The notes under the pieces were generated by a model. The model made no database searches, was not told the origin of the DNA, and saw nothing but the letters and a program-made list of their open reading frames with translations. Made by a program: the position numbers and the translations under genes. From Ophelia neglecta (Eukaryota): 64,000 bases of DNA. Positions 2 through 7,417 of this stretch are shown one piece after another (the stretch's first letter is position 1; every line of letters starts with the position of its first letter). Location of the stretch: positions 44,330,001 to 44,394,000 of the forward strand of contig OZ260667.1 in assembly GCA_965285935.1 (NCBI GenBank), in the 5' to 3' direction.

Positions 2-523
2 AGGATCTGTCACGGGTTTTCCAGGATCACCGGCCACATTGGCTCCCGTCGCCGGTGCCACGGTCTGCTTCTCACCAGATCCGTCGGCAGGAACCCCTGT
101 AGATGTACCCTTGGACTGCTCATTGATATGTTTGCGGGATTTTATTGCATCACCATCGGGATATAGGCCTGAAGTAGGGGGCTGATATTCAGGCCTGACG
201 CGGTCTCCGCCACCGGGACTTGGCAGGGAGACAGGCTGCGGACTGGCTGGGACGATGTTGATGTTGGGAAGGGCGTCAGCGCGTGCCTGTTGTACCTCGC
301 CTGCTTGTTGACTGGGCGAGGGAAGGGGCTGTTCGAGCCAGAATTGAACTGTGTCGTTCCGCCCGAGGGGCCCTTCAACAGGCTCGTTGCTGTCCTCACT
401 ATACTCAGAACTACCAGAAAGCCACTCCTCCCAGCTTTCCTCGGAAAATGTCCGATCCCTTGGTGACACACGATCCCGCAAATTAGCCGACAGGGACTCG
501 TTGGCATCCGTTCCACATGTGCT
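2..523 (-). CDS. Open +1 frame continuing the TRIM gene past its stop; at least 174 codons, runs off the window
   Basis: Hand translation STCGTDANESLSANLRDRVSPRDRTFSEESWEEWLSGSSEYSEDSNEPVEG...ALPNINIVPASPQP...GDPGKPVTDP has no stop. The frame is open from 823 to 2. Composition is GC-rich and coding-like. It is absent from the ORF track because it has no stop inside the window. Confidence 0.55.
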
Positions 524-2300
524 AAAGACGATTCCCGGTTGCCCGGGGCGTTTGGGCGTCGTAGAAGACATCATCGCCCTGGTCGAAGCTGTAATGGCCA
601 GACTTCCTGACCCAGGAGGGTTTGTTGTCTCCGTCGCCGGCGTCCAAACTCTGTGTCTGATCCTGGGCACGCTCCCGTCGCCGACGCCTCCTCGCCGCCA
701 AGCTGTTGTCCTCGTCTGCGGCTGAGTCAGTCGACCGACGGACACCACCCGCCGGTGGCACTTGCTGCTGCAGCGATCGGGAGCGCGTGTTGATGCCGAT
801 ATCCGCGGTCTGTATTTTATCGGTCATCGTGCCGGTGTCGGTCATCTCTGGTCCCTCGGAATCTGAGTCTGAATCCGAGTCCGAACTGCTGCTGCTGCTG
901 GACTCAGACGAGTCCATTTGCTTCTCCGTCTGCACGCCGAATTCTCTCACCTCCGGCTTGCTTTTCTCGTCGTCGTCGTCAGATTCGTCGGAGTCACTCC
1001 CACTATCGCTATCATCGTCATCCTCGGAGCCTGAGCTATCGCTCTCGTCGTCCTTGTCCTTGGTCGTCTTCTTGCCGAGCTTGGTGATGGCGGTGTCCGT
1101 CTGGGTTTGCTTGTGGTTGAGATTGACGGTGATTTCCTGCATACCCGTGCCGTCTGCCCGCGTGGTCAGACGTGAGGTGCTGAGGGGACGGTCCGAGTCT
1201 TGGATATGGCCAAGGTTTACCATGCCCGGAAAGAAGTTTACGACTGTTTTTATCGTCTTCGGCAAGTCTCTTACATTCACCGAGTTCAGTGTGGTCAGTT
1301 TCTCTTGGACATCTTTTTTGAGAAGCAATAATTCGATATCTTTTCCTTTGAGAATCACTTCGGTAAGGTTACATGTGTTACGCAAACTGTCAACTTGTGT
1401 CGAAAGGTCCTTTTTGTTTTCTATAATATCCATGCATTCTTTTCCGTAGATATTCTGCAGCTCTTCTACTAATATTTTCTCGCGGTTTCTTATATCCTGA
1501 ATCAATTTGATGGCGTGATCGTGTACGTTCTGTTCGACGGTTTTTATGATGTCTGCACAGCTGTTAAGCGAGTCCAGTTGGGTGTCGAATTTGGTGATTT
1601 TGTCTTGACAAGAACCAAGTAGGACTTCGATGTTCTCCTTGTATTTGGAGACAGCTTCTCCAAATTGGCTGATCTCGTGGTCCTTGTGCTCGTTGAAGGT
1701 GCACAGAACACAGATACATGTCTCGCAGGGCTCGCAGTAGAATCGTACCACCTCGTCTTGGTGCTCTTTACACTCGATATCCTTCTCGATTTCCACGTCG
1801 AAAATACTGTGGTTGGCGGTGACTTTTGTCTCCCTGTGCATCTTGACGCATTGGGAGCACAACAGCTTGGCACAATCCAGACATTTACTGCTGGCGTCTT
1901 TGTGCTTACGGGTCACCATCTTACAGATATCGCAGAACGGGTACTTGCTCGGCTTCTGGCGCTGCACAATCTCGGACATGGCGGACACCATGAAGTTGTC
2001 CGGCAGCTTCTTGACACCGCCAATGGGCAGCTGGGTCCTCTTGCGACATAGCGGGCAGGTAAACTCGCGGTAGTCGCTGTACTTCTTGTAGGTCGACTCG
2101 GACATCACGTGCTGTTCGATACATTGCTCGCAAAACGTGTGGAGGCAGTTGAGACTTTTTGGGCTTTTGTAACTTTCTAGGCATATCTTACAGGTCAGAA
2201 ACTCTTCATGAATCTCCTGGGCCAGCTTGCCCGAGGACGTCGCGCCTGCCATGGTGAAGTTGCTGGACCGTCCATGAGGACTCGGTGATCTGTTCATTCC
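522..2300 (-). CDS. TRIM/RBCC E3 ubiquitin ligase (RING, B-box1, B-box2, coiled coil, acidic disordered tail), main coding exon; TRIM2/3/56-like
   Basis: 591-aa ORF with RING CKIC...CLHTFCEQC...CPLC, the linker GGVKKLPDNF, B-box1 CDIC...CLDC...LCSQC...H, B-box2 CKEHQDEVVRFYCEPCETCICVLC...H and a following helical region. Splice acceptor tttcttttcctcatcag|GGA ATG at 2300. No NHL or filamin domain in frame 0. Confidence 0.95.
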   Translation of the reverse strand, partial: GMNRSPSPHGRSSNFTMAGATSSGKLAQEIHEEFLTCKICLESYKSPKSLNCLHTFCEQCIEQHVMSESTYKKYSDYREFTCPLCRKRTQLPIGGVKKLPDNFMVSAMSEIVQRQKPSKYPFCDICKMVTRKHKDASSKCLDCAKLLCSQCVKMHRETKVTANHSIFDVEIEKDIECKEHQDEVVRFYCEPCETCICVLCTFNEHKDHEISQFGEAVSKYKENIEVLLGSCQDKITKFDTQLDSLNSCADIIKTVEQNVHDHAIKLIQDIRNREKILVEELQNIYGKECMDIIENKKDLSTQVDSLRNTCNLTEVILKGKDIELLLLKKDVQEKLTTLNSVNVRDLPKTIKTVVNFFPGMVNLGHIQDSDRPLSTSRLTTRADGTGMQEITVNLNHKQTQTDTAITKLGKKTTKDKDDESDSSGSEDDDDSDSGSDSDESDDDDEKSKPEVREFGVQTEKQMDSSESSSSSSSDSDSDSDSEGPEMTDTGTMTDKIQTADIGINTRSRSLQQQVPPAGGVRRSTDSAADEDNSLAARRRRRRERAQDQTQSLDAGDGDNKPSWVRKSGHYSFDQGDDVFYDAQTPRATGNRL

Positions 2301-3021
2301 CTGATGAGGAAAAGAAAGAAAAAATAAACCTTAGTTTCTGCTGATGGCATGTGGGTATCTAAAATTTATACATGTGCTTATTATAGACAATTAACCATTA
2401 GCAAAATCGTGTATCATCACTAATCTTATGTCTCATTCTAAGAAAAATGTCTGATAGTGAATGTATCGGAAATCGATGCTTCCTATTAACATTTGTTTTC
2501 ATTTACTTATTTATTTAGAAGTAGCCGCGTTGACATCTGTCTGAGAATGAGTCAATGAAGTTTAAATGTTTAACTGAGACATAACAAGTTGAACTTTGTA
2601 TTGATAAAATAGGAGTGATATCAGTTCTGCTAAGAAGGCTATAGTCTCTCAGCACAAGTGTTCAGGATTATCATTATCTTTGTTTATCTTATCGTGCAGT
2701 GCAGGAGTTTTGGCCAGAAATCTATGTCTCGATTTCAACAGCCAAAAGGTAATCAAGCGGATTCTAATGGGGCGAAAGAATGCCGGAGGTATGGCATATC
2801 TAAAGCTATTTTAAGAGCTTTATAAGTAACGCTGGTATGAGAGTTTTACAGTAGACAAGAACACTAAATCAAAACATACATCATCTTAACACACATGCTG
2901 AATACCACCAAAAACATTGTACACTAGTGCTAATGAATGCTGCCTCGAAACTCGTCCTTGCTGTTTCGAGGCTGACATGCGGTAAAAAGAAAAACATGCT
3001 TTAGTAACCAAGCCAGCTTAC

Positions 3022-3075
3022 TCCTCTTTCATCGTCGTAACTTCGTCCAGGGCTCAGGCGATTTGGTGAATGCAT
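3022..3075 (-). CDS. Candidate alternative first coding exon of the TRIM gene (MHSPNRLSPGRSYDDERG)
   Basis: ATG at 3075 with an in-frame upstream TAA, 18 codons, then donor GGA|gtaagc in phase 0, which matches the phase-0 acceptor at 2300. Confidence 0.6.
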
Positions 3076-5740: not shown

Positions 5741-7417
5741 CTAGGAAAATAGAAATTAAACATGCAACTATCCAATTAATATGTCAAATTAAAAAAGAAG
5801 GATTCAACGTCAATGTCGGAGTAGGTCGGCATAAAAACGTCTTATTATTAGGAATTGAGCAGCAGGGGACGTACATTTACATACATTCCATAAAGAACTG
5901 GCGAACAAAATTTCCACCAACAAGGGTTAAAGCGAGGAGAGGCGGGGATAGCATTGTCACAGTAAGATGCAAGTTTATCAATAAACTTTGCTAGTTTATC
6001 AATAAACCGAATGTACGCAAATTGACCTGTTACCACATACGAGTGTGCGCTTTCCTATCATAACATATTTAATGGTCAAGGGCATTATTTGAAACCAATA
6101 TAGATTCAGGGTTACGCTGAATAAAATATATAACCGTTTTAACAACCGAGGCCAATAATGTAACCTAACAGACGTCTTCAGTGGTAATTTGCCTGTAGAA
6201 AGGCGAAGAAATAGACCAAACAAGTTCGGTAATAGCTAGTGTGCTTGGGACCTCTTTCTCGAGAACAAAGAGCTGATAAAGAGATACCTACACTTTTGAG
6301 GAGTTCAGCTCAGATACTCCGACCATGAAGCATATAGGTCACATGTGATCTATCATGGCGCCGCGGCCAAGGAATATAAACTAACTGCCAGCTTGTATGT
6401 GTGAAACAAAGACATGTATTACCCATGTAGATGTCAAACACAAAAACGTGTAAAAAAGCGGCAGCAATGACCTTTATCACATTTATATTTTTAACAGCCG
6501 GGTCTAGGCTTATATTGTATGTGACATTGAGATATCACTTCGCAAGAGGTATAGATAACATGAGACATACCATCGAGTATAATTTTTACTAATACTACAT
6601 AGACGAGTATAATGTTAACCGCCGTACTATACAAGGTAACTTCCTGTTTCATGAAATGTTTTCTCGAACAACCTTGCACCATCCTAACAAAGATGGACCG
6701 GGGCCTATTAAACAAGCGGCTAGATTTAGTTCAAGCTAAGCATTTCAGGCATTTCTGATTTCGAAACAATTAACAACAATAGTTTTATTCCTAAATACAT
6801 GAAGGGGGAACTTCTCACTGAAGACTGTTTTAGAGTGGTGCTGTAAAGTCGACCGGCAAGTTCTAGAACTAGTTTAAAAACATCAGGATGGTACTCCACA
6901 TGCCAGATATGACGTGTTTCTACCGGAAGTCGAGTGTTATGGCGGCCATGCCGGTAGTAGACACAGAAGCTTCTACAGATCATGGTATTGTTTATGTATA
7001 GTCCAGATTACTTGGCAATTTGGTCCTAAACTCCTAAGCTATTGAAACACAGCAAATAGCAGCTGCGGAAACATGCCTAGAAACTTTGTGCCCCATATCA
7101 TGCTAGCTGCTATAAAGAAAAGCATCAGAAACTACATGTTCAAAGTACACGGCTTTAGAGACAACAGACGAAAATAAGCAACACGGATTAAACATAGTTT
7201 CTAAAGTATAAAATCAATCACCTACAAAAAAAATGTGCAAAGCTAGTTCACTACAGTTATACTTACATAATAAATTGGCTTGGTAACTCAACCAGACACT
7301 TCTATTTTAGTTATAAGTGGCAACCAGTCAATTTCAGACATTTCGACTCGTGATAACAATCCCACATCAGACCAAAGCCGGTTAAGTATTTAAAAGAATT
7401 TTCAATTCTGTACTTAC

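Follow-up and report, generated by a model that had tools for sequence, protein, structure and literature searches.

Where does a gene end when its reading frame closes at a stop codon but an adjacent frame stays open? This question is raised by one end of the 64,000-nucleotide (nt) stretch of the Ophelia neglecta genome analysed here (NCBI GenBank assembly GCA_965285935.1, contig OZ260667.1, positions 44,330,001 to 44,394,000; hereafter, the window, to which coordinates refer unless another sequence is named). There, a minus-strand open reading frame (ORF) at 2297..522 encodes 591 amino acids (aa) of a TRIM protein of the RING/B-box/coiled-coil (RBCC) type and ends with the codons CGT CTT TAG C (CTT at 527-525, TAG at 524-522). 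A sequence-only reading of the window, the coordinates of which proved correct throughout, had proposed that some ribosomes slip from CUU to UUU at this stop and enter the +1 frame. Taking the flanking DNA and the orthologues of the gene into account, we consider it rather likely that programmed +1 frameshifting indeed operates here, yielding a short, soluble TRIM protein and a giant isoform that ends in a CaaX box and is probably farnesylated.

The open +1 frame and its conservation

The +1 frame, which could previously be followed for 174 stop-free codons to the edge of the window, continues through the flanking DNA (L002, the locus with 10 kb fetched beyond the window) and remains open for 2,006 codons past the UAG, closing at a TGA (L002 3905-3903). 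In the other direction, 101 codons ahead of the TAG are likewise stop-free in this frame. An opening of this length cannot be due to chance. Frame 0, in agreement with the earlier description, meets a UAA 12 codons after the stop (485-483). The GC content downstream of the stop, which had been described as exon-like, is 0.47-0.57 for the whole length of the +1 ORF; the drop to 0.38 comes only beyond the TGA of that ORF, where poly(A) signals are found. Because the GC content remains at the coding level up to that TGA, the AATAAA at 141-146, which had been considered as a possible mark of a plain 3' untranslated region (UTR), represents mere codons within the open +1 frame.

The sequence-only reading had suggested that the +1 ORF might reach the C-terminal domain that is missing from frame 0, a suggestion that did not hold. 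Pfam searches with the tails of three species matched no family, and NHL, filamin and SPRY domains were absent from head and tail alike. A protein representative search with the 330 C-terminal residues of the +1 ORF gave no match; in a word-indexed protein search, residues 1-500 retrieved only P0001, the +1 product of the closest relative (L004), and the first 400 residues alone retrieved nothing, so that no fused or spliced protein model emerged from these searches. The +1 ORF encodes a long disordered region, with Pro/Thr/Val-rich repeats inside it and a CaaX end, not the absent globular TRIM domain. Its C-terminus, ...KMKKDKDCVVQ, combines a polybasic stretch with a CaaX box. The +1 tails in four species end with CVVQ, CVIQ, CSVM and CSMM, each preceded by KDK[D/E], and thus present the Cys at position -4, the two mostly aliphatic residues, the terminal X and the upstream polybasic stretch that characterize such boxes. 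The isoform carrying this end is probably farnesylated and membrane-bound. Within the O. neglecta tail, at L002 ~6100-7200 on the minus strand (+1 residues ~900-1250), near-identical units of 14 residues, rich in Pro, Thr and Val (TKPVAPVPTPVTPV-like), form a long array; one of comparable regularity is absent from the L004 tail.

Relatives were drawn from ENA, NCBI, Logan and JGI assemblies, the head and tail pieces of the gene being searched separately. The earlier reading had called for a CTTTAG-type site in related species, and an NTT TAG C site followed by a +1 ORF is present in five of them. L004 shares CTT TAG C with O. neglecta (+1 frame open for 1,499 codons); L009 has ATT TAG C (2,060 codons); and GTT TAG C is found in L005 (identical in sequence to L006 and L007; 941 codons, interrupted by scaffold Ns), L010 (1,371 codons) and L014 (at least 104 codons, to the contig end). 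In all six species, frame 0 closes within 2-13 codons after the UAG, and the overlap between the first ORF and the +1 ORF amounts to 37-101 codons. Where the sequence is complete, no stop or frame-breaking indel interrupts the +1 ORF of any orthologue.

The six species represent three deeply diverged lineages. Synonymous sites are saturated, with pS of 0.77 between O. neglecta and L004 and 0.83 between L005 and L010, and the tails of the three lineages show no BLASTP similarity to one another. Given this saturation and the divergence of the tails beyond BLASTP recognition, the frame break must be old and real, and the downstream frame must have been kept open independently for a long time. In a tree of the RBCC part, the six species fall in one poorly resolved group, apart from a large mollusc clade, and a single origin may be envisaged.

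Evidence on what the tail belongs to comes from annotated isoforms of Octopus and Patella (P0071 and P0073), in which an RBCC head is joined to a CaaX end (CLLQ and CVVA, after basic residues). Because the two parts are joined in these isoforms, head and tail form one polypeptide in this gene family, and the predicted CaaX end is shared across phyla. The scallop and Lineus isoforms end with CMQ and CVI, with Cys at -3, and may be truncated models.

The switch of reading frame and the shift site

If the ribosome changes frame at the UAG, selection on the protein should change frame there as well, as the sequence-only reading had anticipated, and this is what the substitutions indicate. In the FYDA block upstream of the stop, variation falls at frame-0 third positions and is silent in frame 0 but radical in the +1 frame (for example, S/F/C and T/M). 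Over the last 12-15 codons in the lineage with GTT, frame-0 third positions account for 5 of the 7 differences between L005 and L010 and for 7 of the 13 between L010 and L014. Past the stop, it is the third positions of the +1 frame that carry the excess: position 1 has 24 differences, position 2 has 30 and position 3 has 47. Because the excess moves from frame 0 to +1 at this point, the switch can be placed at the UAG or no more than about 5 codons before it. Dual coding was rejected for codons -15 to -6, where the changes leave the frame-0 residue as it is but alter the +1 residue radically; over the five codons adjoining the UAG, dual coding and an RNA element would both fit and cannot be told apart.

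It is precisely in these last codons that the nucleotide sequence itself is conserved. The third base is invariant across the six species in only 3.8% of the 447 gap-free codon columns of frame 0, compared with four of the five final codons, the best of 443 windows. The resulting invariant core, C-GGG-M-ATC-R-K-N-TTTAGC, includes the C after the stop and leaves the first base of the P-site codon free to vary, giving CUU, GUU or AUU. In the comparison of O. neglecta with L004, 19 consecutive codons for the same residue (-15 to +11) retain the third base, against a background of 0.45, and this run is the top window of the ~2,000-codon comparison. Such a peak of constraint is the usual mark of recoding signals and may be one here. 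Between these two species (window 432-521, L004:10063-10152), third bases are kept for about 11 codons past the UAG in the +1 frame, including a palindrome, ACATGT; this conservation is confined to the two and could reflect a lineage-specific 3' stimulator.

The variation of the P-site codon bears on the proposal that CUU is the shifty codon: this stands for O. neglecta and L004 and fails as a strict rule, the site being NUU, with C, G or A in the first position, across the six species. Each of the three codons can re-pair on UUU in the +1 frame, and codons of this type are known to function in eukaryotes. The natural shift sites of antizyme include UUU-, GUU- and AUU-UGA; in COS-7 cells, CUU-UGA matches UCC-UGA in efficiency; and UAG and UAA come close to UGA (Ivanov and Atkins, PMC1874602). 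CUU, GUU and AUU before UAG belong to the same NUU-stop class.

Programmed frameshifting and its rivals

The scenario that, in our view, best accommodates these observations is as follows. The gene consists of a short coding exon at the 5' end and a single giant exon of ~7.8 kb. Its RING/B-box/putative coiled-coil part would be translated in frame 0 as far as CUU UAG C, where most ribosomes probably terminate and release a soluble protein of ~610 aa. A C following the stop is a weak termination context. A fraction of the ribosomes would pause at the poorly recognized UAG-C, and, in these, we infer that peptidyl-tRNA(Leu) slips from CUU to UUU, so that AGC (Ser) is read next and 2,006 further codons are translated. 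The second product, of ~2,600 aa, would thus carry the same E3-ligase head followed by the long disordered tail with its polybasic CaaX end, and the predicted trans-frame junction peptide is ...ATGNRL-STCGTDANESLSANLR. The conserved stretch of ten bases that immediately precedes the shift codon (the CGGGAAUCGU block) may act as the stimulator. The proposal of a short RBCC protein and a longer trans-frame isoform thus draws support from the layout in the orthologues, the switch of frame and the probable mRNA L014, which is unspliced at the site; how often the slip would occur, and whether prenylation indeed divides the labour between a soluble and an anchored form, are conjectural parts of this scheme.

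The closest parallel is antizyme (OAZ), a eukaryotic cellular gene in which, likewise, a first ORF ends with a stop, a second, overlapping ORF in the +1 frame lacks initiation of its own, the shift occurs at the codon before the stop, the P-site codons include UUU, GUU and AUU, and the site is immediately preceded by a conserved block of primary sequence (PMC1874602). The differences are substantial as well. The TRIM/RBCC family is unrelated to antizyme; the stop is UAG here and UGA there; no 3' pseudoknot or stem-loop was found here, nor is there a known link to polyamines; and, whereas antizyme begins with a short leader ORF, the first ORF here encodes a complete functional protein and the second a disordered tail of 2,006 codons. 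Bacterial prfB (RF2), with CUU-UGA-C, shares the logic of a heptamer made of CUU, a stop and a C, the re-pairing on UUU and a G-rich block a few bases upstream, but its stimulator works by Shine-Dalgarno pairing, which eukaryotic ribosomes lack, and its shift serves as an autoregulatory sensor of RF2, whereas the stop here is UAG and no regulator is known. In yeast Ty1 and ABP140 (CUU-AGG-C), tRNA-Leu also slips from CUU at a slow A site in a eukaryotic host; there, however, the slow codon is a rare sense codon, not a stop, and here the P site varies among CUU, GUU and AUU. Finally, the TRIM45-, TRIM56- and TRIM2-like proteins of molluscs have the same RING, B-boxes 1 and 2 and helical region, and some of their isoforms are CaaX-ended, but they obtain alternative C-termini by splicing, in contrast to the arrangement here, where a single exon holds both head and tail, each in its own frame.

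Several considerations weigh against frameshifting. To our knowledge, programmed +1 frameshifting is extremely rare in animal nuclear genes, antizyme being essentially the sole well-established case, and the prior probability is low. When the 126 nt from the shift codon onwards were folded for the six species, no stable 3' RNA structure was found (z-scores +0.5 to +1.8), although the lack of such a structure is common for +1 sites. An AUG in the +1 frame lies 12-20 codons before the stop in all six species. Four loci from related lineages (L008, L011, L012 and L015) have no long ORF directly after the stop, and molluscs splice normally at this end of the gene, so the family has other means of varying it. 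Finally, the status of L014 as an mRNA depends on a missing intron, and its sequence would also fit an mRNA for the short isoform alone.

If frameshifting is nevertheless confirmed, this would be a second conserved animal +1 case, in a gene unrelated to antizyme; literature searches found no earlier report of frameshifting in this TRIM gene family. Metazoan shifty-stop recoding would then be in wider use for setting the ratio of two isoforms, and a new 5' stimulatory sequence would become available for dissection. An E3-ligase head would be coupled to an optional, lipid-anchored tail of ~2,000 residues that may control where the ligase acts, and annotators would have concrete grounds for keeping such genes at full length instead of flagging them as disrupted. 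We give about even chances to a broader proposition, namely, that N-UUU-AGC is a conserved, non-antizyme cellular +1 frameshift site in animals that converts a soluble TRIM protein into a giant, membrane-anchored one, at a boundary that is a hot spot of recoding where mechanisms have been exchanged in evolution, with apparent readthrough at UGA-CAA-CCA in sister lineages and splicing in molluscs. The contrast with the mollusc splicing and the apparent readthrough would then offer a natural experiment on recoding mechanisms replacing one another.

Among the rival explanations, the one that survives best, while still being unlikely, is alternative splicing within the giant exon: removal of an exitron of 3n+1 bases, such as the 82-nt interval at 522..603 on the minus strand (AA/GTCTGG...TTTAG/C, slashes marking the putative junctions), would join the two frames, and the unspliced mRNA would make the short protein. 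The weak phase-2 donor that the sequence-only reading had pointed out exists, at 603, and a phase-2 GT lies at the same place in L004 (CG/GTCAGG); TTTAG resembles the end of an acceptor, the 60-74 nt before the TAG are free of AG in these two species, and numerous isoforms arise by splicing at the same end of the mollusc orthologues. However, both donors have C at +3 and differ at +4, and the GT at this position is found in only these two species: L005 has no phase-2 GT in the last 48 codons, L009 has very poor ones only, and in L010, which also lacks a donor-like GT near the stop, the nearest that could be used with the TAG acceptor is at -163 and scores poorly. Intron 1 of the gene served as the in-gene reference for the appearance of genuine splice sites, and each of the eight genomic loci inspected has an acceptor equivalent to its own. 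Genuine intron-1 acceptors reach 9.9 and 11.9 with a simple matrix, compared with -5 to -9 for the TAG acceptor and at most 4.9 for other candidates; the matrices hold generic values that underrate the gene's own donor, and only the acceptor comparison was counted as evidence. The CGGGAAT block, being rich in purines, does not resemble a polypyrimidine tract, the 82 nt are kept as frame-0 coding sequence despite saturated synonymous sites, and no GT..AG pair of 3n+1 length with usable, well-scoring and positionally conserved signals was found among the species examined. Neither U12 intron signals nor homopolymers longer than 4, as would favour transcriptional slippage, were found at the site. 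The 82-nt interval was rejected as a constitutive intron.

In L014, the exon-1 peptide is fused directly to exon 2, and GTT TAG C with the open +1 frame is retained. All eight genomic loci carry an intron at this junction; L014 lacks it and is therefore probably a spliced mRNA. As such, it argues against constitutive splicing at the site and remains compatible with a minor spliced isoform. Two further candidates were considered. Spliced-leader (SL) trans-splicing at TTTAG/C was dropped, the tail having no early in-frame AUG and molluscs having head and tail in one protein; reassignment or readthrough of UAG in this clade was rejected, with frame 0 closing after 2-13 codons.

Somewhat less probable again is separate translation of the tail, from an internal promoter and the +1 AUG located 16-17 codons ahead of the stop or by reinitiation, which would make two proteins from overlapping ORFs. 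The AUG present in every species fits this explanation, and conservation in both frames is one possible reading of the final five codons ahead of the stop. These AUGs, however, stem from GAT-G codon pairs in an Asp-rich motif, where they are expected by chance, and the codons that follow, as far as -6, vary silently with respect to frame 0 but radically with respect to +1, showing no selection on the +1 frame. Initiation downstream of the TAG is excluded in O. neglecta because the first Met of the +1 ORF there is codon 430. Besides, L014 is one probable mRNA from exon 1 to beyond the stop, and the Octopus and Patella proteins unite the RBCC head and the CaaX end in one chain. The layout is the one that frameshifting requires, a first ORF ended by a stop and an overlapping second ORF in the +1 frame without initiation of its own.

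It is very improbable that the downstream frame is unexpressed, a genuine frameshift mutation having truncated the gene and left the long ORF as a decaying relic in the 3' UTR: RBCC-only short products do occur in relatives, as in the polyadenylated L013 with its AT-rich UTR directly after the stop, but stop-free ORFs of 1,371-2,060 codons persist in three lineages despite saturation and divergence of the tails, the CaaX end is retained, and the third-position excess continues in the +1 frame. As for a one-base error in the O. neglecta assembly, also raised by the sequence-only reading, nothing speaks for it besides the general rate of such errors, and the same frame relation with TTTAGC recurs in five independent assemblies of other species; the layout is therefore neither an assembly indel, the chance of which we regard as negligible, nor a recent mutation or pseudogene.

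Gene structure and other stop boundaries in relatives

The locus is present in one copy in the O. neglecta genome (features in Table 1), and the arrangement of exon 1, intron 1 and exon 2 in L004 is identical. The N-terminal RING (Pfam PF00097, 36.8 bits, cut-off 21) is followed by two stretches of B-box (Pfam PF00643, 44.8 bits, cut-off 24.1), the succession of zinc fingers that places the protein among the TRIM/RBCC E3 ligases, and, after the B-boxes, by a weak SHE3-like helical match in Pfam at residues 201-284. The RBCC product is 79% identical to its L004 counterpart; its closest relatives among named proteins, from molluscs, annelids, nemerteans and brachiopods, share 50-68% identity with it.

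Table 1. Features of the TRIM locus and the proposed shift site (window coordinates; slashes mark exon-intron junctions)
Feature	Position	Strand	Description
Coding exon 1	3022..3075	-	18 codons, MHSPNRLSPG...ERG; donor GGA/GTAAGC; recognized by its similarity to the L014 N-terminus and to the matching exon of L004
Intron 1	2301..3021	-	721 nt; GTAAGC donor, long polypyrimidine tract, then CAG/G
Frame-0 part of exon 2	525..2300	-	RING, two B-boxes, helical region, acidic Ser/Asp-rich stretch, RRRRRRER, DDVFYDA; last sense codon CTT
Conserved block C GGG AAT CGT	528..537	-	Immediately 5' of the shift codon; candidate 5' stimulator
Proposed shift site CUU UAG C	521..527	-	TTTAGC invariant in six species; preceding base C, G or A
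Frame-0 TAA	483..485	-	12 codons past the UAG
+1 ORF, first 174 codons	1..523	-	Stop-free to the window edge; runs on to L002 3906

Elsewhere in the family, the same gene boundary takes other forms. In L018 (1892-1969) and L019 (4424-4501), the RBCC ORF ends with ...TAC ATG TGA CAA CCA and is followed by a 24-codon extension in frame 0, in which all five nucleotide differences between the two are synonymous and the similarity of which ends right after the second stop. The UGA-CAA-CCA context fits the stop-CARYYA readthrough motif. L011 (11849-11923) has ATG TGA CAT, and its extension, of 23 codons, contains a similar [FY][ML]RY motif. What these three loci have at the boundary looks like stop-codon readthrough.

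In L013, a more distant relative, the RBCC ORF of a polyadenylated transcript (2239-2759) ends with TGT TAG C, the +1 frame closes after 9 codons, and the UTR that comes next, 518 nt long and AT-rich, bears a poly(A) signal and a poly(A) tail; because the transcript is polyadenylated, its UTR AT-rich and its +1 frame closed, a plain mRNA for the short isoform exists in that lineage. In L008 (2296-2310) and L012 (11825-11840), which represent two other lineages, a TGA directly precedes AGTAAA or AGTTAT, which creates a donor-like GT one base past the stop (TGAA/GT), where a +1-frame exon would end in phase 0. Upstream of the L011 orthologue, at L011:1-734, lies a LINE-type element with reverse transcriptase and endonuclease Pfam matches.

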